From Macrostomum hystrix (Eukaryota; Animalia; Platyhelminthes), in assembly GCA_950097015.1 (NCBI GenBank), contig CATNEN010000007.1:806001-870000 (forward strand): DNA of 64,000 nt, written 5' to 3'. Below the pieces are notes generated by a model that worked only from the letters and a program-made list of their open reading frames with translations, did not search any database and was not told the DNA's origin. The position numbers and the translations under genes were made by a program. Numbering within the stretch: position 1 is the stretch's first letter; every line of letters starts with the position of its first letter. Below, one piece after another: positions 16,206 to 48,660 of the stretch.

Positions 16206-16752
16206 TTAAGTAAGAAAAGCGACGGTAAAGCACAGCTGATTGCTTTCATTCAATCATATTCTGTGACCGAGTGTCTCATTCATCATCAGCAACCTTTCTA
16301 TTCAGCTTTACTCAGCCACAAGTTCGAGAGTGTTTAAAAACTTCTAGAAGTCTCAGCTAGATGGGGAAAGCAACAGGATTTGGGATCAAAATTGAGCAAG
16401 TAGAAGTTTTTGCACCCTCGGGAATACGACCCTACTGTACATAATGTTGCAATCCTTTTATTTCTCAAAAACGACTCTAAGAAGATTGAGTACTCTGTGT
16501 TACTCACTGGATAAGAGATTTTCGGTGGGCAGGAAGGCTTTCAGATTAGAATGAGTGAATTTTCAGACCGAGTCTCTGCAGGATCATGGAAAAATCTATA
16601 TGCGCTCTGCTTTGGGCATTTGTAAGACACACTTCTTTAACAGCCCCACGCACATAAAATGTAGACTGTAAAACATTTTATATGATAATATTATACTATA
16701 TTGACTATTGGGAAAATATTAAAATAGATAACTCACAACTGCCTCCGAAATA

Positions 16753-19150
16753 CCCTTCCTCCCATTCCTCATATCCCATCCTCCCATTCCTCACATCCCA
16801 TCCACCCATTCCTCATATCCCATCCTCCCATTCCTCATATCCCATCCTCCCATTCCTCACATCCCATCCTCCCATTCCTCACATCCCATCCTCCCATTCC
16901 TCATATCCCATCAGCTCCCATTCCTCACATCCCATCCACCCATTCCTCATATCCCATCCTCCCATTCCTCATATCCCATCCTCCCAATCCTCATATCCCA
17001 TCCTCCCATTCCTCATATCCCATCCTCCCATTCCTCAAATCCCATCCTCCCATTCCTCATATCCCATCCTCCCATTCCTCATATCCCATCCTCCCATTCC
17101 TCAAATCCCATCCTCCCATTCCTCACATCCCATACTCCCATTCCTCACATCCCATCCTCCCATTCCTCATATCCCATCCTCCCATTCCTCATATCCCATC
17201 CTCCCAATCCTCAAATCCCATCCTCCCATTCCTCACATCCCATCCTCCCAATCCTCATATCCCATCCTCCCATTCCTCATATCCCATCCTCCCATTACTC
17301 ATATCCCATCCTCCCAATCCTCATATCCCATCCTCCCATTCCTCATATCCCATCCTCCCATTCTTCATATCCCATACTCCCATTCCTCATATCCCATCCT
17401 CCCATTCCTCAAATCCCATCCTCCCATTCCTCACATCCCATCCTCCCATTCCTCATATCCCATCCTCTCATTCCTCATATCCCATCCTCCCATTCCTCAA
17501 ATCCCATCCTCCCATTCCTCACATCCCATCCTCCCATTCCTCACATCCCATCCTCCCATTCCTCATATCCCATCAGCTCCCATTCCTCACATCCCATCCA
17601 CCCATTCCTCACATCCCATCAGCTCCCATTCCTCACATCCCATCAGCTCCCAATCCTCATATCCCATCCTCCCATTCCTCATATCCCATCCTCCCATTCC
17701 TCAAATCCCATCCTCCCATTCCTCATATCCCATCCTCCCATTCCTCATATCCCATCCTCCCATTCCTCAAATCCCATCCTCCCATTCCTCACATCCCATA
17801 CTCCCATTCCTCACATCCCATCCTCCCATTCCTCACATCCCATCCTCCCATTCCTCATATCCCATCCTCCCATTCCTCAAATCCCATCCTCCCATTCCTC
17901 ATATCCCATCCTCCCAATCCTCATATCCCATCAGCTTCCATTCCTCACATCCCATCAGCTTCCATTCCTCACATCCCATCAGCTCCCATTCCTCATATCC
18001 CATCCTCCCATTCCTCATATCCCATCCTCTCATTCCTCATATCCCATCCTCCCAATCCTCATATCCCATCAGCTTCCATTCCTCACATCCCATCAGCTTC
18101 CATTCCTCACATCCCATCAGCTCCCATTCCTCACATCCCATCAGCTCCCATTCCTCACATCCCATCAGCTCCCATTCCTCATATCCCATCAGCTTCCATT
18201 CCTCACATCCCATCAGCTTCCATTCCTCACATCCCATCAGCTTCCATTCCTCATATCCCATCAGCTTCCATTCCTCACATCCCATCAGCTTCCATTCCTC
18301 ATATCCCATTAGCTCCCATTCCTCACATCCCATCAGCTTCCATTCCTCACATCCCATCAGCTTCCATTCCTCACATCCCATCAGCTCCCATTCCTCACAT
18401 CCCATCAGCTCCCATTCCTCATATCCCATCCTCCCATTCCTCATATCCCATCCTCCCATTCCTCACATCCCATCAGCTTCCATTCCTCACATCCCATCAG
18501 CTTCCATTCCTCACATCCCATCAGCTCCCATTCCTCACATCCCATCAGCTCCCATTCCTCACATCCCATCCTCCCATTCCTCACATCCCATCTTCCCATT
18601 CCTCATATCCCATCAGCTCCCATTCCTCACATCCCATCAGCTCCCATTCCTCACATCCCATCAGCTCCCATTCCTCATATCCCATCCTCCCATTCCTCAT
18701 ATCCCATCCTCCCATTCCTCATATCCTATCCTCCCATTCCTCATATCCCATCAGCTCCCATTCCTCATATCCCATCAGCTCCCATTCCTCATATGCCATC
18801 CTCCCATTCCTCACATCCCATCAGCTTCCATTCCTCATATCCCATCAGCTCCCATTCCTCATATCCCATCCTCCCATTCCTCACATCCCATCCTCCCATT
18901 CCTCACATCCCATCCTCCCATTCCTCACATCCTATCCTCCCATTCCTCATATCCCATCAGCTCCCATTCCTCATATGCCATCCTCCCATTTCTCATATCC
19001 AATCAGCTCCCATTCCTCATATCCCATCCTCCCATTTCTCACATCCCATCCTCCCATTCCTCATATCCCATCCTCCCATTTCTCACATCCCATCCTCCCA
19101 TTCCTCATATCCCATCCTCCCATTCCTCACATTCCTCAATTTCCATCCCC
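16753..19150. repeat. C-rich 22/24-bp minisatellite (CCCATCCTCCCATTCCTCATAT / CCCATCAGCTCCCATTCCTCACAT)
   Basis: Direct reading; source of the 896-aa H/P/S/I ORF. Confidence 0.96.
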
Positions 19151-19158
19151 AATCTCAC

Positions 19159-19830
19159 CTTCAGGCTCATTCCAGACTGTGCATCCACGCTGTCAGATTC
19201 TGTTTTGACTGCCACAGCTGCCGCAGTCAGTGCCTGGTGCTGTTGCAGCTGCTGTTGTTGCTGTTGCTGCCCGGATCTCCTAGTCCTCAGCCAGAGCAGT
19301 CCGACCAAGAACACCACAGCCAATAGAGCTCCGAATGCGGCCAAACAGACGATGAGCACAAGACTTCTCTGATACTGCTGCTGCTGCTGCTGCTGATTGT
19401 TCAAACGGCGATCAATCTCAGACTGTCCCCTGCCGACCAAGTCGAAGCGTGAGTCGCCCTGGCCGACGTCTTGCTCAGTTGGCAGCGCCGGAACATTTCT
19501 AACCAGCACGGTGAGCACGGCTGCCGAGCTGAGCTGCGGGGCGCCGAAGTCGGAGGCTTCAATCAGCAGGGGGTATCGGCCGCAGTCGGCGAGATTCAAC
19601 CGTCTGGCCAGGGTCAGGTGTCCCGTCTCCGCCTGCAGGCTGAAAAGGCCGGCGCTGTTGCCGCCGACAATGCGAAACTGTAGTCGCGAGTTCGATTCCT
19701 CGTCGGCGTCTTTCGCCTGCAGATCGGCCACTGGCGATCGTGCGAGGTTGTGGCAGGAGGTCTCAACCTGGGTGGCGTTGCCAGAGCTGGGATAGATGAA
19801 CCTGGGCGGGTTGTCGTTGAGGTCCGTCAC
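19159..19830 (-). CDS. Protocadherin exon 4: end of EC6, EC7, transmembrane helix, start of tail
   Basis: Acceptor CCGCAG|GTG joins VVVR to VTDLNDNPP; DYE-type and ASDFG motifs; TM LVLIVCLAAFGALLAVVFLVGLLWL; donor AAG|GTGAGA phase 0. Confidence 0.92.
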
Positions 19831-39157: not shown

Positions 39158-39158
39158 T

Positions 39159-39171
39159 TGGCGTCGCAAGG
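39159..39171 (+). other. Primer-binding site TGGCGTCGCAAGG
   Basis: TGG (complement of tRNA CCA) one base after the LTR; cognate tRNA not identified. Confidence 0.7.
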
Positions 39172-39178
39172 CCGAACC

Positions 39179-42100
39179 ATGGCCTTCCTACAACTGCCTC
39201 CACCAGCCCACTTTAGCATCAGAGACGACCCTCACTCTGTAAGCAAGCGCTGGCAGGAGTGGTCGACCAACCTTCTGCGGTACCTGGCGGCAACCGGCAT
39301 CAAAGATGAGACGCAGAAACGCCAGATCCTTCTGTATACGGCAGGCAAAGAAGTGAGCGACCTGTACAACGAGATCGCCACCCAGTCGCAGCAACAAGAA
39401 GGCGAGCCCGCAGCCGAGCCCACGGTCGACCAGCTGATCGCACAGTTCAGCACGCACTTCCAAGGCCGCGATAACGTCGTCTTCATTCGATACCAGTTTC
39501 GCCACTGTCTCCAGGAAGAAGGCGAATCCATAGACGCTTGGCACAGCAGACTGTGGAGCGCCTCGGAAACCTGCAAGTTCGAGGGTCTCCGCCAGTCGCT
39601 CATCAGGGACCAAATCGTGGCCAGCTGTCGCAGCGAGTCACTGAGGAAGCGCCTGCTGAATATCCCCAACATCAGCCTGTCGGACACTCTCCAGCTGGCC
39701 AGGACGCACGAGGCAGCAGAGAAGCAGGCGGCCATCATGACCAGGACAGCGGCAGCCTCTGAGGAAGTGGCGCAACTGCGCCGCCAGCGCCACCCGCTGC
39801 CGGAACCTTCGCGTGAGTCGCAGCAATTTGCTAAGTGCATCCGGTGCGGCGAGCTGGGCCACAAGAGCTGCAGCAGGGCGCAAGGCAAGCGATGCAGCAG
39901 CTGCGGCAAGGCCAACCATCTGGCCAAGGCCTGCCTCAGCAGCCGCTCGAAGATTAACTCACTGCAGCCCGAGCAGGACCAGTCAGCCGACCAACCACCC
40001 AACGAGGTGTTCTGCACGCTCAGCGGCAAGGACGACAGCGCCAAGTTCGTCATCAGAATCAACGGCAGTCCGGTCCGCACACTGATCGACAGCGGAGCGA
40101 GCTGCAACGTGTTGGACATGGCGACGTTCCACAGAATCTGCCGGCCCGGCACGCCGCTTTCGCCGTCCAGCACCACAGTCTTTGCGCTTGGTGCCAGCGA
40201 GCCACTGAAGACAGCCGGCCAAACAACGCTCACTGTCAGAGCGAACCACCGCGAATTGCAGGCCAATTTCATCGTCATCAGCAGCAACTGCACACCGATT
40301 CTCGGAAGATCGTCCAGCACAAAGCTCGGCATGCTGAGAGTCGGACCTGAAGTCAGCACGAACTCTGCGGTGGTGGCCAGCCTAGCTAAGCCGGCCAGCA
40401 GTGAGGACCAGCACCTGCCCAAGCAGCTGCAACTTCAGACAATCCTGGCGGAATTCAGCGACTGCTTTCAAGGCATCGGATGCGTGAAGGGAGTCAGCGT
40501 CACTATCAGGCTCAGGCCGGATGCCACTCCAGTCTGCCAGCCGCCATCCCGAGTGCCCGTTCACCTAAGGAATGCTGTAATCAAGGAGCTGGAAGATCAA
40601 CTGGCACTGGGAATCGTCGAACGAGTGCGTGGTCCAACAGCCTGGTGCTCCAGAATGGTCGCAGTTCCAAAGGCCGAGCAGGGCGAGGTTCGCATCACCC
40701 AGGACCTCCGCGAGGTGAACAAGTACGTCATCCCAGAGAAGCAGCCTATACCCACATTCGAAGAGGTGACGGACGAGATGGCGGGCGCGACGTATTTCTC
40801 GGAGCTGGACGTCGCCAAAGCCTTCCACCAAATTGAAGTCGCCGAGGAGTCTAGAGACCTGCTAACGTTCTCATCACCCATCGGGCTCCTGCGGCTGCGC
40901 CGGCTCTGCATGGGCTTCACATCCGCCTCCGAGATCCTCCAGCGGGTGATGACCTCCGTCCTGAGTGGCCTCCCCGGCGTCCGCTGGGTGCACGACGACA
41001 TCCTGGTGTACGCGAAAAACATTGAAGAGCACAACCAGCGCCTGCGAGACTGCCTGGCCCGGTTGAAGGCTAGCAACATCACGTTGAACCCCAAGAAGTG
41101 CCGCTTCGCCCGGCCAGAGGTCGACTTTCTCGCCATGCGGCTCTCTGCATGCGGCATTCACCCAAGCGCCGAGAAAGTAGCGGCCATCAACAACTTCAAG
41201 CGGCCGACCAACGCAACCGAGGTGCGCTCCTTCCTCGGCCTCGTCACCTTCGTAGCGCGCTTCATCAGCAACCTGTCTGACAGGGCCCGGCCACTCCGCG
41301 AGCTGACAAGGCAGGCCGCCGAGTGGACGTGGGGCGAAAAGCAAGAGGCCGCATTCAACGACATCAAACAGACGATCGCCAGCAGCCACGCGCTGGCATT
41401 CTTCAATAGTGAGCTGCAGACTCAGCTGATCGTGGACGCCAGCCCCACGGGTGTCGGCGCCATCCTTGCCCAAGTTCAGCCAGACGGATCGACGCGGCCG
41501 GTGGCATACGCGAGCCGCAGCCTCAGCCCGACCGAGCAGCGCTACTCCCAGACGGAGCGAGAGGCCCTCGCGGTGAAGTACGGCGGCCTGAAGTTCTACC
41601 ACTACCTCAGCGGGGGTGGCAGTTTCAAGGTCATCACCGACCACAAGCCGCTGATATCCCTGTTCAGCACGGGGTCTCGGCCGCCACCCCGCATTGAGCG
41701 CATGGCGCTGCGACTGCAAGACCTTGTCTTTCGGGTCGTGTACCAGCCCGGCGCCGGCAACCCGTCTGACGTCCTGAGCCGCCAGCCGCTGCCAATGCCA
41801 CCAAACAACGTCGGCGAGCAGGCGGACGCGATCTACGTGGCCACGGCAGTCCAAGCTGCCACTCCGGTGTCCATCAGCCTGGGCACAATCAAGGCGGCCT
41901 CCGAACGAGACGGCACGGTACAAGCAGCGCTACACGCCATCCGCGGCCACCAATGGGACAAGAGTGACACGTGCCTGCAGGGACTCCATGGCGTATCCCA
42001 CGAACTATCCGAGCTGAACGGCCTGCTGCTGCGCGGCAGTCAGCTGTACATGCCGACGACTCTGCGATACCGGTGCATGCAGCTGGCCCACCAGGGACAC

Positions 42101-43162
42101 CAGGGCGTCAAAAAAACGCTCGACCGCTTGCAAGCGAAGGTCTGGTGGCCAGGCATGCGAGCATCCGTGGAGGCGCACGTAGCAGCCTGCACCAGCTGCC
42201 TGACCTGCACCAGCGAGACCTCGCCGAAAGCCACGCCGCTAAAGCCGACCGAACTGCCGGAGGGCCCCTGGCTCGAGCTGGGGCTCGACTTCCTCGGACC
42301 GATAAACGGCAAGTCGCTGCTCGTCTGTACGGACCACTTCTCCAGGTTCCCGCTCGTGGAGGTCATGGCCAGCACCACCGCCTCCGCCGTCATCAACGTG
42401 CTACGCCGGTGGTTTAGCATCTTCGGGCAGCCGACAAAGGTGACCACAGACAATGGCCCACCCTTCGCATCGGCCGAGTTCAGCAGCTTCCTGATGGATC
42501 AGGGCGCACGGCACCATCGGATCACCCCTCTCTACCCTCAGGCCAACGGCGCAACGGAGCGGTGCAATCAAGGGCTGAACAAGGCTATCCGCGCAGCGAT
42601 CGTCGAAGGCAGGGACTGGACACTGGCCCTGGACGAGTACCTGGCAGCGTACAGACGCACTCCGCACTGCTCCACGGGCGTCGCGCCGGCCAGTCTGTTA
42701 TTTGGCAGGCAGATCAACGATGTGATCCCGAGTCTCCGACACTCGCAGCCCGTCGACGCGACTCGAGCGGCCATTGCCGACAGCGACAGACAGGCCAAGG
42801 AGGCTATGAAGCGGCACGCCGACCGACGCTTCAGAGCCGCCGACCACGGCATTCGCGCCGGCGACCGCGTCCTCAGGCGCCAGCAGCCCCGGCAAAAGAC
42901 CGACGCCTTCTACGAGTCGGCGCCGTTGACCGTGGCCGAGGTGCAAGGCGACTCCCTGCTCATGCAGCGCGACGACGTCGTCTGCCGCAGGCACGCCACG
43001 CAGGTCAAGCGGCTGCCCGGGCAGCCTGAGCAGTCCGATCAGCAGCCGCTCGAACCTCCCGACGCCCCTGAGCTCACGGAGCCAGTCGCAGCCCGGCTCC
43101 ACCCACGGCGGGCGAAGGACCCAGAGAGGAACTACAGAGAACCCGACCTGCGCAGAAGCTGA
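39179..43162 (+). CDS. gag-pol: Gag-Pol polyprotein, 1327 aa from the first ATG
   Basis: Two Cys/His knuckles, protease LIDSGAS, RT WVHDD, RNase H DAS/EREAL/TDHKPL, integrase HHCC and D-D-E (LDF, TDNG, NGATER); no stops or frameshifts. Confidence 0.96.
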   Translation: MAFLQLPPPAHFSIRDDPHSVSKRWQEWSTNLLRYLAATGIKDETQKRQILLYTAGKEVSDLYNEIATQSQQQEGEPAAEPTVDQLIAQFSTHFQGRDNVVFIRYQFRHCLQEEGESIDAWHSRLWSASETCKFEGLRQSLIRDQIVASCRSESLRKRLLNIPNISLSDTLQLARTHEAAEKQAAIMTRTAAASEEVAQLRRQRHPLPEPSRESQQFAKCIRCGELGHKSCSRAQGKRCSSCGKANHLAKACLSSRSKINSLQPEQDQSADQPPNEVFCTLSGKDDSAKFVIRINGSPVRTLIDSGASCNVLDMATFHRICRPGTPLSPSSTTVFALGASEPLKTAGQTTLTVRANHRELQANFIVISSNCTPILGRSSSTKLGMLRVGPEVSTNSAVVASLAKPASSEDQHLPKQLQLQTILAEFSDCFQGIGCVKGVSVTIRLRPDATPVCQPPSRVPVHLRNAVIKELEDQLALGIVERVRGPTAWCSRMVAVPKAEQGEVRITQDLREVNKYVIPEKQPIPTFEEVTDEMAGATYFSELDVAKAFHQIEVAEESRDLLTFSSPIGLLRLRRLCMGFTSASEILQRVMTSVLSGLPGVRWVHDDILVYAKNIEEHNQRLRDCLARLKASNITLNPKKCRFARPEVDFLAMRLSACGIHPSAEKVAAINNFKRPTNATEVRSFLGLVTFVARFISNLSDRARPLRELTRQAAEWTWGEKQEAAFNDIKQTIASSHALAFFNSELQTQLIVDASPTGVGAILAQVQPDGSTRPVAYASRSLSPTEQRYSQTEREALAVKYGGLKFYHYLSGGGSFKVITDHKPLISLFSTGSRPPPRIERMALRLQDLVFRVVYQPGAGNPSDVLSRQPLPMPPNNVGEQADAIYVATAVQAATPVSISLGTIKAASERDGTVQAALHAIRGHQWDKSDTCLQGLHGVSHELSELNGLLLRGSQLYMPTTLRYRCMQLAHQGHQGVKKTLDRLQAKVWWPGMRASVEAHVAACTSCLTCTSETSPKATPLKPTELPEGPWLELGLDFLGPINGKSLLVCTDHFSRFPLVEVMASTTASAVINVLRRWFSIFGQPTKVTTDNGPPFASAEFSSFLMDQGARHHRITPLYPQANGATERCNQGLNKAIRAAIVEGRDWTLALDEYLAAYRRTPHCSTGVAPASLLFGRQINDVIPSLRHSQPVDATRAAIADSDRQAKEAMKRHADRRFRAADHGIRAGDRVLRRQQPRQKTDAFYESAPLTVAEVQGDSLLMQRDDVVCRRHATQVKRLPGQPEQSDQQPLEPPDAPELTEPVAARLHPRRAKDPERNYREPDLRRS

Positions 43163-44875: not shown

Positions 44876-45150
44876 TTAGTCGCTTCCGGCATGGACGCTG
44901 CGCTTCTTGCGATAGGAGCTGCGGTAATAGCGATTGTAGAACTCGCCCAGGATGGTGTCCACATCTTTCTCGCTCTTGGCTTGACACTCGTCCCGGCAGG
45001 ACCGGATGCTGGCGCCGCGGTAGCCGATGCTGGAGCTCACGCAGCAGCGGCCGGGCGGACAGTCAGAGTCCGATTGGCAGTCGATGCGGCGCGGCAAGTT
45101 GAAGTCGTCGAAGCCGCGCGGAATTTCGCGTTCGCAAATGCCGCCGTATC
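44876..45150 (-). CDS. Secreted cysteine-rich peptide, exon 3 (last Cys of module 1, module 2, RKKR tail)
   Basis: Acceptor CTCCCCAACAG|GA phase 1; YGGICERE...CQSDSDCPPGRCC...CRDEC...RKKRSVHAGSD*. Confidence 0.82.
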
Positions 45151-46459
45151 CTGTTGGGGAGGTTCGGATTGGTTTCTATTTTTAGCTTTTTGGGGTTTTC
45201 TCGAGGTGGGTGTGAATCGTATGGTTTTGTGCCTTAATTCTTATTGGACACGATTTTTAGCACCAGGGGTTCTCTATGGTTTTAAATGAAATATATTTTT
45301 GTTTCTTAATTCTAATTGGTTGCTATTTTTAGCGTCTGGGCTTTCCTTGGAGTGGGTGCGAATCGTATGAGTTTAATGTCTTAATTTTTATTGGACACTA
45401 TTTTTTAGCATCAGGGGGTTTCCTTTAGTGGTAATGAAGAATCTGCTCCTGAATTCTCCTTTTTTCAACTGGATTAAATTGGATTTCATTTTTAGTATGG
45501 TTGGTATATTTAGATATATATACTGGGTTTAGGACATAATTTCTGCTTCAAGTTTCAGAGGCCGATCGAGTAAAGAGACACTCAAGAATGAAAGTTGATA
45601 CATTTCGCATATAAGCCCACCATTTATATACATATAAATGGCCGATATACAGTATTCCTGAGGGAAATTTTCGACTCCGAACCGGGAACGGTCGAAGCGA
45701 AGCCAATTGACGAAATAAAACGAGGCCCGGGGTATCTGGCAGGATTGGCGGATTGAGTTTAGCGTTAATAAACTCGATTGCCGAGACCAATTTACCGACT
45801 AGCTAAGCGAGGAATGAAAAATGCGAAACTGAATGCATTGAAAAGATTGTTAAAGATTCTGGAGCTGTCTTCTGGACCCGGGAGCTAAAATAGCCTTCCA
45901 TTACCCGCTTCAAATTCAACCGTTGTGGTGGAGTTAATGAAGTTTTTTGCTGCTAAAAGAATTACGACTGTGAGAAGGCAGAAAAAAGGGGAGATTTTCC
46001 TTGCTAATTTTCTGCTTCTTCTCCTAGAAGGAATGCCGAACTGAGAAGTGAGTCGCATAAGCCTCTCAAACTGTTGATGGCATGCGGTCTGGCGATTATA
46101 AAGAATGAGAATACATGCAAAATTTAACAGCCTAAACGGAGACTTCAGTAAGGGTGTGTCGGAGAAGACACAAGGCGTCTAAATTTAGACGGCTGAAGCA
46201 GGAAAAGAATTTTATTCGTGTCCATGGCGATTTGCTGCCGAAAAGCCGGGGGCTCGGGGTTGGTGGAAGAAAACGGAAGCGCGGATGCTGGGACTAAAAA
46301 GTGGCTGGGCAGTTTTTTCCTCAGTTTAGGGGATGTTGTCTTTAGCTTTGTCGACTTCTAAACTTAAGCTTAGCCACGCTTGGTTTATTACTGCCTATTA
46401 GTTTTCCGGAAACTGTTCTGAGTGCATGTAAAACTGCTTTTTTAATTAGAGGAAATGGA

Positions 46460-47778
46460 GGTAGAGAGGAAGTGGAGCGAGAGAAAGGAAAAAAGAGAGA
46501 GGAGAGAGAGGAGGGAGAGGAGAGGAGGGAGAGGAGAAAGAGGAGAGAGGGGGGAAGAGGAGAGGAGGGAGAGGAGAGAGACAGGGGGAGGAGATTAGGG
46601 AGAGGAGAGAGAGGAGAGAGAGGGGGGAGAGGAGAGGATGGAGAGGAGAGAGAAGAGAGAGAGGGGGAAGAGGAGAGGATGGAGAGGAGAGAGAGGGAGA
46701 GGAGAGAGAGGAGAGAGAGGGGGAAGAGGAGAGGAGGGAGAGGAGAGAGAGGGGGAGAGGAGAGGAGGGAGAGGAGAGAGAGGAGAGAGAGGAGGAAGAG
46801 GAGAGGAGGGATAGAATAGAGAGGGGGAGAGGAGAGGAGGGAGAGGAGAGAGATGAGAGAGAGGGGGAAGAGGAGAGGAGGGAGAGGAGAGAGAGGGGGG
46901 AGAGGAGAGGAGGGAGAGGAGAGAGAGGAGAGAGGGGGGAGAGGGGGGAGAGGAGAGAGAGGGGGAGAGGAGAGGAGGGAGAGGAGAGAGAGGAGAGAGG
47001 GGGGAAGAGGAGAGGAGGGAGAGGAGAGAGACAGGGGGGAGGAGATGAGGGAGAGGAGAGAGAGGAGAGAGGGGGGAGAGGGGGGAGAGGAGAGAGAGGG
47101 GGAGAGGAGAGGAGGGAGAGGAGAGAGAGGAGAGAGGGGGGAAGAGGAGAGGAGGGAGAGGAGAGAGACAGGGGGGAGGAGATGAGGGAGAGGAGAGAGA
47201 GGAGAGAGACGGGGGAGAGGAGAGGAGGGAGAGGAGAGAGAGGAGAGAGAGGGGGAAGAGGAGAGGAGGGAGAGGAGAGAGAGGGAGAGGAGAGAGAGGA
47301 GAGAGAGGGGAAGAGGAGAGGAGGGAGAGGAGAGGAGGGAGAGGAGAGAGAGGAGAGGAGGGAGAGGAGGGATAGAAGAGAGAGGGGGAGAGGAGAGGAG
47401 GGAGAGGAGAGAGATGAGAGATAGGGGGAAGAGGAGAGGAGGGAGAGGAGAGAGAGGGGGAGAGGAGAGGAGGGAGAGGAGAGAGAGGAGAGGAGGGAGA
47501 GGAGGGATAGTAGAGAGAGGGGGAGAGGAGAGGAGGGAGAGGAGAGAGATGAGAGAGAGGGGGAAGAGGAGAGGAGGGAGAGGAGAGAGAGGGGGCGGAG
47601 GAGATGAGGGAGAGGAGAGAGAGGGAGAGAAGCGAGAGGAGGGAGAGCAGAGAGAGGGGGAGAGGAGAGGAGGGAGAGGAGAGAGATGAGTGAGAGTAGG
47701 GAGAAGAGGGAGGAGAGGGAGAGGTGGGAGAGAAGGGAGAGAAGGGAGAGGAGGGAGAGAAGGCAGAGGGGGAGAGAA
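46460..47778. repeat. AG-rich low-complexity satellite in intron 2 of the peptide gene
   Basis: Direct reading. Confidence 0.93.
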
Positions 47779-47933
47779 GAAAGCGGGCAGGTAGTAAATA
47801 AGAAAGACGTGTTAGATCGGAGGAAATCAGAACAGTTAAGAAATCAGTTAAAGTGCTGACAAAAGTTCGAGCACGGCAATATTTAAGCGCCACCCCTAGG
47901 AGCAGGTTGCACGTGTCACACAGCCGCACTCAC

Positions 47934-48009
47934 TCTTGTAGCCGTATCGGCAGACCAGTCCTGAGCAGCAGACTGTGTCGGAATAGCAATAGGAGCCTTC
48001 AAAGCCGCA
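47934..48009 (-). CDS. Secreted cysteine-rich peptide, exon 2 (CGFEGSYCYSDTVCCSGLVCRYGYK)
   Basis: Acceptor CTGACTTTCAG| phase 0; donor AAG A|GTGAGT phase 1. Confidence 0.82.
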
Positions 48010-48205
48010 CTGAAAGTCAGATGAAAAAAGGAAAGTCATCGTGACCTCGACGATTAGTATGAAATGATAAATTCTGCCTAAAGATTGGTGACTGTAGGAT
48101 TTTGCGTCAGAAAATCGGTTAATCTTCTGAAATCTAATATCTTTCAGCGAGCATTTGCACCAGCAGTTTAGAAACACCATTTTTAGGTGGAGTCGCATAT
48201 TGTAA

Positions 48206-48497
48206 GACTGAGAATCGAGTCCCTGAAGGACTGAGAATCGAGTCCCTGAAGGACTGAGAATCGAGTCCCTGAAGGACTGAGAATCGAGTCCCTGAAGGAC
48301 TCAGAATCGAGTCCCTGAAGGACTCAGAATCGAGTCCCTGAAGGACTGAGAATCGAGTCCCTGAAGGACTCAGAATCGAGTCCCTGAAGGACTGAGAATC
48401 GAGTCCCTGAAGGACTCAGAATCGAGTCCCTGAAGGACTGAGAATCGATTCCCTGAAGGACTCAGAATCGAGTCCCTGAAGGACTCAGAATCGATTT
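48206..48497. repeat. 23-bp minisatellite GACT(G/C)AGAATCGAGTCCCTGAAG in intron 1 of the peptide gene
   Basis: Direct reading. Confidence 0.93.
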
Positions 48498-48552
48498 CAT
48501 GAAGCACAGGGTCGTACAGAGTCCATTTACGGTGCCAAAAATAACTGCTCAC

Positions 48553-48660
48553 ATTGATATCGGAGTCACCCATGATGCGAATGAAGCCGCAAGCTTGTCG
48601 CGGACCCAGCAACACAGACAGGGCCGCTAGCAGAGCCACCAGACAAGACGCCGTAGGCAT
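48553..48660 (-). CDS. Secreted cysteine-rich peptide, exon 1 (signal peptide)
   Basis: MPTASCLVALLAALSVLLGPRQACG-FIRIMGDSDIN; donor AAT|GTGAGC phase 0 matches exon 2. Confidence 0.78.

Follow-up and report, generated by a model that had tools for sequence, protein, structure and literature searches.

What kind of protein is encoded on the minus strand between positions 48660 and 44876 of the 64,000-nt stretch of Macrostomum hystrix DNA analysed here (assembly GCA_950097015.1, contig CATNEN010000007.1, positions 806,001 to 870,000; hereafter the window), and to which family does it belong? A first-pass annotation, made from the letters alone, had joined three exons at this locus into a secreted peptide with two six-cysteine modules. 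In this study, we compared the gene with public sequences, searched the genome for its relatives, and predicted the fold of its product. The best overall explanation, to which we give a probability of roughly 0.55, is a functional gene encoding a secretory preproprotein of 152 residues that forms a divergent, 12-cysteine branch of the prohormone-3 (ITG-like) family.

Gene structure and conservation

The gene comprises three exons (36 + 25 + 1 + 90 residues) with canonical GT/AG splice sites in phases 0 and then 1, and the codon split between exons 2 and 3 is AGA (Arg) (Table 1). The exon translations and the splice sites agree with the join first proposed, both in its phases and in its length of 152 residues. 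Module 1 has the spacing C-x6-C-x5-CC-x4-C-x10-C; its first five cysteines (C-x6-C-x5-CC-x4-C) are located in exon 2, and the sixth is encoded by exon 3. Module 2 has the spacing C-x5-C-x4-CC-x14-C-x3-C. Both spacings, as read from the exon translations, are exactly those that had been annotated.

Exon 3 alone retrieved a single protein (P0001, E = 1.6e-33) in a word search of 5.8 billion sequences. P0001 is a 149-residue hypothetical protein of Macrostomum lignano (PAA53895, PAA74677, and PAA82649) with the UniRef name 'Ixodegrin protein'. It aligns in order with the three exons and continues uninterrupted through both joins (...SDSN|CGFEG... and ...YGYK|R|YGGVC...). Another orthologue, P0020, came from a profile search; it is a 154-residue open reading frame (ORF) on an intron-free contig of 925 nt (L010) from the public run SRR28338164. 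In a blastn comparison, positions 226 and 302 of this contig correspond to window positions 48009 and 45150, which places its junctions (225|226 and 301|302) exactly at the joins 48553|48009 and 47934|45150. The contig is most simply read as the spliced transcript of a related species. Three genomic copies in M. lignano are interrupted by introns at these two sites, in identical phases and with GTGAGT donors, and the counterpart of intron 2 (2.1–2.5 kb) occupies the same site and phase. The identifiers Mlig005172 and SRR28338164 were not mentioned in the literature searched, and two supplementary files of a study on neoblasts and the germline did not contain the M. lignano gene identifiers. 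Queries for the searches and fold predictions were single exons, the full-length orthologues P0001 and P0020, other family members, or family profiles.

The protein is approximately 60–90% identical to its M. lignano counterpart per exon, and exon 3 is 69–70% identical to P0020 and P0001. Nonsynonymous (dN) and synonymous (dS) substitution rates were calculated exon by exon against these two orthologues by the Nei–Gojobori method. Exon 2 gave a dN of 0.06–0.12 and a dS of 1.1–2.2 (dN/dS about 0.05), and exon 3 gave a dN of 0.19–0.21 and a dS of 0.52–0.72 (dN/dS 0.27–0.40). The collinear orthologues, the intron-free contig with matching junctions, the shared intron positions and phases, and the dN/dS values well below 1 therefore indicate that the gene is real and constrained, and we regard the gene and its family as almost certainly genuine. 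The opposite reading, in which the locus would be a chance arrangement of ORFs or a pseudogene with no functional gene, has a negligible probability and is effectively refuted already by the cross-species evidence: in addition to the low dN/dS, the reading frames are uninterrupted, the canonical splice sites are conserved, and orthologues are present in two other species.

The Macrostomum family and its products

When 1.84 billion representative sequences were searched by phmmer with P0001, five proteins scored at E ≤ 0.001. Besides the query, they comprised three paralogue groups of M. lignano and P0005, a repeat protein taken from an ENA record and apparently spurious. P0021, from a profile word search, brings the M. 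lignano paralogue groups to four. The first-pass annotation had proposed a search for paralogues, and a profile search of the M. hystrix genome located seven dispersed loci with the same exon split, this gene included. The six other loci are on C38 (28.76 and 31.46 Mb), C25 (0.74 and 7.12 Mb), C13 (0.33 Mb), and C1 (21.41 Mb), and the gene in the window is on C7. Each of the seven has an exon-3-like match and, 0.3–4 kb upstream, an exon-2-like match. In the exon-2 matches that were inspected, the first cysteine codon directly follows the AG and Cys1–Cys5 are within the match; the next exon of the inspected paralogues opens with ...[YF]G[GR]xC, which supplies Cys6. The exon structure is fixed across the family, with the knot split between Cys5 and Cys6. 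M. lignano and the M. hystrix genome correspond one-to-one in their paralogue groups, and the seven-gene Macrostomum family is under purifying selection. The original remark that the family was not recognisable is borne out insofar as no curated family matches, but the protein is not an orphan, being one of seven members of a Macrostomum family.

Family-wide features are the signal peptide, a hydrophobic motif after it, both cysteine modules, a Tyr-rich segment, a basic cluster (RKKR, RKR, or RR), and a short unconserved end. The hydrophobic core at residues 6–18 in exon 1 (Kyte–Doolittle 9-residue windows up to 3.0) supports the earlier description of a secreted peptide with a signal sequence. 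The region between the signal sequence and Cys1 is GFIRIMGDSDIN. Its motif GFIRIMG is identical in the window protein, P0001, and P0020, and the paralogues have [FY][IL]x[IL][MIV]GG at this point. The C-terminal tail of the window protein is ILGEFYNRYYRSSY-RKKR-SVHAGSD. The Tyr-rich motif (ILGxYYxRYY / LFxQYYSxL) is kept in all paralogues and is predicted to be helical. The retention of motifs at both ends in all paralogues suggests a common class of binding partner.

The furin-type tail of the first-pass annotation is found in all three orthologues, where RKKR is kept and precedes a brief C-terminal peptide that varies: SVHAGSD in the window, SVNEN in P0001, and SSGSSDDRN in P0020. The sequence of this peptide is not conserved. 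Nearly every family member has an R-K/R-R cluster close to its C-terminus, with a short unconserved tail behind it. Several tails of M. hystrix paralogues finish with ...RKRFR, ...FRKRDQ..., or ...LFR, and those of M. lignano paralogues finish with ...PRRFGR or ...RKRFG, which is superficially RF-amide-like. We considered RF-amide/NPF-type processing of the paralogue tails (PRRFGR and RKRFG) and rejected it, as the family-wide feature is the basic cluster and not Gly-amidation. A cut at PRR between the two modules was likewise rejected, as the site is not conserved (PPR in P0020).

We propose a maturation pathway for this protein. The signal peptide would be removed co-translationally, probably before GFIRIMG, by analogy with the orthologues, in which small residues precede the motif. 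The twelve cysteines would form six disulfides. Furin or a prohormone convertase would cut at RKKR, a carboxypeptidase would trim the basic residues, and the released product would be a two-domain, six-disulfide protein of approximately 104 residues. This protein would act extracellularly on a receptor or channel as a hormone- or neuromodulator-like ligand. The processing machinery is present in the genus because M. lignano has a PC2 homologue, which is needed for development (PMC4490696). A hormone-like secreted ligand trimmed at RKKR is our best guess for the mature product.

UniRef names within the family include ixodegrin, WAP, calglandulin, prokineticin domain, disintegrin domain, CC domain, and ITG-like peptide. 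These are mutually inconsistent automatic labels. Two M. lignano UniRef entries (P0002 and P0019) are database models of the orthologue that look mis-predicted: one is a 380-residue fusion with an upstream Pro/Gln-rich gene, and the other, of 193 residues, includes intron 2 sequence and overruns the stop. These models may account for part of the odd naming.

Kinship with prohormone-3 and alternative affinities

Prohormone-3, also known as ITG-like, is a precursor of arthropods, annelids, and molluscs. It was discovered through peptidomics of the honey-bee brain, is regarded as an ancient prohormone family of protostomes (PMC3890597, PMC6425005), and is expressed in ganglia (PMC8398477, PMC4018349). 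The precursors that were compared have a signal peptide, a short N-terminal region, a C-C-CC-C-C module, a 4-Cys module, and a C-x5-C-xn-CC module, to which insects add ...KR-ITGQGNRLF-KR. The ITG peptide is not present in all members (PMC8398477), and the oyster, scallop, and lobster proteins contain 12 cysteines only (PMC8398477, PMC4018349).

We compared the cysteine spacings by eye, using sequences from two paper supplements. In Platynereis prohormone-3 (PMC3890597 supplement), the first cysteine module is C-x6-C-x5-CC-x4-C-x10-C, identical in spacing to module 1, and the first module of the wasp protein is spaced x4/x5/x4/x9. The Platynereis protein also shares GGxCFTxxxCC with the Macrostomum paralogues. 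Its later module, C-x5-C-xn-CC-x13-C-x8-C with a basic loop, conforms to the pattern C-x5-C-xn-CC-x13/14-C-xn-C with a basic loop that prohormone-3 has in common with module 2. At the two ends, both families have a short cysteine-free N-terminal region after the signal peptide and a C-terminal tail in which a dibasic site precedes a short peptide. In number, the 12 cysteines equal those reported for oyster, scallop, and lobster. A resemblance of QY..SG..KR to the insect ITG-like tail was set aside, as it is missing from the annelid sequence and is probably due to chance.

In the ESM Atlas, the top cluster for both orthologues was the arthropod 'ITG-like peptide', with scores of 0.86 (173 shared features) and 0.85 (167). 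The next clusters were colipase-like, astakine/prokineticin, and Dickkopf, at 0.79–0.83. One M. lignano paralogue is the protein that bears the ITG-like name in UniRef.

The fold of the modules was examined by profile and structure comparison. Pfam scans covered the three exons singly, the two orthologues, and 13 family members, and no model reached its cut-off. The sub-threshold matches were Toxin_12, Conotoxin_I2, Dickkopf_N, WAP, and Prokineticin (E about 0.003–0.07); for exon 2 they were Toxin_12 (E = 0.0026) and Conotoxin_I2. Exon 3 alone had no match in the PDB by sequence. A family profile searched against the PDB matched the remipede double inhibitor cystine knot (ICK) toxin Xt3a (E = 0.0026) and the tachystatins (E = 0.13). 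An AlphaFold2 model of P0001, built with the family alignment, had a predicted local distance difference test (pLDDT) score of 60 overall and 70–76 over module 1. Residues 33–77 of this model, in an exhaustive comparison with known structures by VIA-align, matched almost only knottins, the best being Hc3a (Z = 4.8, root-mean-square deviation 2.5 Å, 38 residues). Foldseek on the same model listed Xt3a, tachystatin B, and DkTx, none at E ≤ 0.001. For exon 3 alone, the AlphaFold2 model (pLDDT 60) gave weak matches to WAP, Dkk, and ISTX-I structures (Z ≤ 2.7, Foldseek E > 1), and its tail was predicted to be helical. We accept module 1 as knottin-like on the basis of the model. Thus, the knottin-type fold suggested at first is retained for module 1 (Z = 4.8 and the Xt3a profile match), but module 2 has weak matches only. 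A secreted, disulfide-rich protein that contains a knottin is a highly probable description of the product.

The same fold raises another interpretation, in which the gene would encode a lineage-specific product of gland cells, namely a double-knottin-type defence, antimicrobial, or prey-directed peptide that converged on the C-C-CC-C-C framework and is unrelated to prohormone-3. Module 1 resembles Xt3a, the tachystatins, and spider ICK toxins. The double-knot toxins (remipede phi-xibalbin3-Xt3a, tarantula DkTx, and funnel-web Hi1a) also carry two consecutive six-Cys C-C-CC-C-C modules on one secreted chain; both knots of Xt3a align with module 1, and many ICK structures match this module as well. 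ITG-like proteins are themselves abundant in one spider venom (PMC7407881). Relatives were found in Macrostomum only, and seven paralogues with a moderately fast exon 3 (dN/dS 0.3–0.4) are common features of secreted effector families. However, module 2 has an x14 loop and a final loop of x3 and was not modelled as a knottin, and the Macrostomum protein adds a helical Tyr-rich tail and an N-terminal motif that the double-knot toxins do not have. The flatworm is not known as venomous, and the likeness is one of framework. Moreover, module 1 is strongly constrained (dN/dS about 0.05), the one-to-one paralogue groups of M. lignano and M. hystrix are not recently expanded, and the motifs kept at both ends in all paralogues suggest a shared partner. 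We therefore consider an exocrine knottin unlikely.

Module 2 points to a further set of candidates. Its start, CxxDxDCxxGxCC (C-x5-C-x4-CC), is like that of prokineticins, astakine, colipase, and Dickkopf, which include small, secreted, Cys-rich ligands, and the protein might be a colipase-fold cytokine of the prokineticin/astakine or Dickkopf type with the post-signal hydrophobic motif in the role of the AVIT N-terminus. In that case module 2, with or without module 1, would adopt the colipase-like fold. The conservation of this motif directly after the signal peptide, the Atlas neighbours cited above, the sub-threshold Dickkopf_N and Prokineticin matches, and a paralogue named 'Prokineticin domain-containing' in UniRef are consistent with this idea. 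Nevertheless, the 12 cysteines are arranged as 6 + 6 and not in the 10-Cys colipase pattern. AVITGA is missing, and 12–13 residues, not 6, separate the N-terminus from the first cysteine. Of the 13 family members scanned, one matched the prokineticin model (PF06607), with an E-value of 0.071, and this model did not appear among the matches for exon 3 of the window; the Dickkopf model (PF04706) scored 12–18 bits on fragments of both modules, below its cut-off of 25 bits. Colipase and Dkk structures matched with Z ≤ 2.8. Dickkopf proteins consist of two ten-Cys domains. A wide-ranging survey reported that Platyhelminthes lack prokineticins (PMC6425005). The likeness noted in the first-pass annotation accordingly extends to the opening C-x5-C-x4-CC of module 2, whereas the Pfam and structural matches stayed below threshold or weak, and a colipase-fold cytokine appears improbable.

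Still less credence is due to a small protease inhibitor, WAP-like or otherwise, or to an integrin-blocking ixodegrin. UniRef uses the names 'WAP domain-containing protein' and 'Ixodegrin protein' in this family, the WAP model matched CxxDxDCPxGxCC with an E-value of 0.015–0.028, and SLPI, omwaprin, and nawaprin appeared as weak structural matches (Z = 2.2–2.7). A WAP domain, however, needs eight cysteines and a short CC-x3-5-C, whereas module 2 has six and x14, and PF00095 scored 15.2 bits over 18 residues against a cut-off of 20.8, all scores being below the curated cut-offs. Ixodegrins are putative disintegrins of tick saliva that are defined by an RGD or KGD tripeptide between cysteines and have a prokineticin-like cysteine motif (PMC3386632). 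The Macrostomum protein shares their small size, secretion, and Cys-rich, prokineticin-like motif but differs in its two-domain architecture. Neither RGD nor KGD occurs in the exon translations, P0001, or P0020. The 'ixodegrin' label is therefore unsupported, and its attachment to the M. lignano orthologue appears to be an automatic transfer.

Returning to prohormone-3, a number of observations weigh against the overall explanation or, within it, against the kinship. The Macrostomum protein lacks the 4-Cys middle module found in 16-Cys forms, as well as the peptide ITGQGNR[IL]F that follows KR in arthropods. The N-terminal region is not similar to WGGLFNRF of insects or WSKYYEDSF of Platynereis, and the Tyr-rich tail (ILGxYYxRYY / LFxQYYS) is absent from the insect and annelid sequences compared. 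The phmmer search of 1.84 billion representatives yielded no prohormone-3 match and, the spurious P0005 aside, no significant relative outside Macrostomum at E ≤ 0.001, and the word-index searches, including two profile searches, returned Macrostomum proteins only. Atlas scores below 0.9 are leads only by the calibration of the tool itself. Unrelated ICK toxins, Xt3a among them, commonly carry the CCxGxxC motif too. Both AlphaFold2 models have low confidence (pLDDT about 60), and module 2, despite its C-C-CC-C-C framework, has structural matches of Z ≤ 2.7 and sub-threshold Pfam matches only.

Another difference from prohormone-3 is the expansion of the family to seven genes in Macrostomum. 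Taking both sides together, we place the kinship of the Macrostomum family with prohormone-3 at slightly less than even odds. No report of prohormone-3 from flatworms was found in the literature searched. More tentatively, the seven genes could be the first platyhelminth representatives of prohormone-3 (ITG-like), in a stripped-down 12-Cys form that consists of a knottin, a six-Cys domain, and a Tyr-rich helix.

The locus and its wider meaning

The coordinates of the gene and of its surroundings are listed in Table 1. The two possible regulatory elements that flank the gene are weak pattern matches.

Table 1 Positions of the gene, its parts, and neighbouring features in the window
Feature	Position	Strand	Description
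TATAAA	48782-48787	minus	127 nt 5' of ATG; possible core promoter; weak pattern match
Exon 1	48660-48553	minus	ATG start; 36 codons; phase-0 end; translation MPTASCLVALLAALSVLLGPRQACGFIRIMGDSDIN; GTGAGC directly after
Signal peptide	48589-48660	minus	predicted; approximately residues 1-24; in exon 1
GFIRIMG motif	48568-48588	minus	in exon 1; followed by DSDIN
Intron 1	48010-48552	minus	GTGAGC...TTTCAG
Minisatellite	48206-48494		in intron 1; 23-bp unit; 12.6 copies; 96% matches
Exon 2	48009-47934	minus	after ...TTTCAG; 25 codons + 1 base; translation CGFEGSYCYSDTVCCSGLVCRYGYK; then GTGAGT
Intron 2	45151-47933	minus	GTGAGT...CAACAG; phase 1
CT-rich array	46494-47776		in intron 2; approximately 1.28 kb; imperfect; GA-rich on plus strand; higher-order periods 72 and 137 bp
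Exon 3	45150-44876	minus	after ...CAACAG; completes AGA (Arg) codon; 90 further residues
YGGIC	45134-45148	minus	in exon 3; contains Cys6 of module 1
Linker	45080-45133	minus	in exon 3
Module 2	44984-45079	minus	in exon 3
Tyr-rich tail	44912-44953	minus	in exon 3
RKKR	44900-44911	minus	in exon 3
SVHAGSD	44879-44899	minus	in exon 3
TAA stop	44876-44878	minus	in exon 3
ATTAAA	44732-44737	minus	141 nt 3' of stop; possible poly(A) signal; weak pattern match
Retrotransposon-type ORF	39158-43162	plus	1334 residues; uninterrupted
Long ORF	16682-19372	plus	896 residues; ATG-started

Purine-rich blocks like the array in intron 2 account for the extreme GC skew at 10–16 kb of the window. The DNA around the gene is eukaryotic in character. 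The 1334-residue ORF, 1.7 kb downstream of the gene and on the opposite strand, encodes an aspartyl protease, reverse transcriptase, RNase H, integrase zinc-binding domain, and integrase core (Pfam E-values down to 4e-29), and is an apparently intact pol of a Ty3/gypsy-type long terminal repeat retrotransposon. The 896-residue ORF, for which Pfam gave no match at E ≤ 1, is located where the GC skew is strongly negative.

Taken by itself, the gene is an ordinary member of a small family of secreted proteins, whose M. lignano orthologues are already public as hypothetical proteins with misleading automatic names. The family can now be cleanly defined by its seven loci, its fixed exon structure, and its N-terminal and Tyr-rich tail motifs, and the name 'ixodegrin' demonstrably lacks support. 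The link to prohormone-3 is testable. If it fails, the genes would constitute one more lineage-specific family of Cys-rich secreted proteins. Our data suggest that this flatworm-restricted, two-domain, Cys-rich secreted family may be a divergent prohormone-3. Prohormone-3 is a conserved precursor, discovered in the honey bee in 2006 and still without an assigned function or receptor. If the kinship is true, Macrostomum, with RNA interference and transgenesis available in M. lignano, would be a convenient system for de-orphanising prohormone-3.

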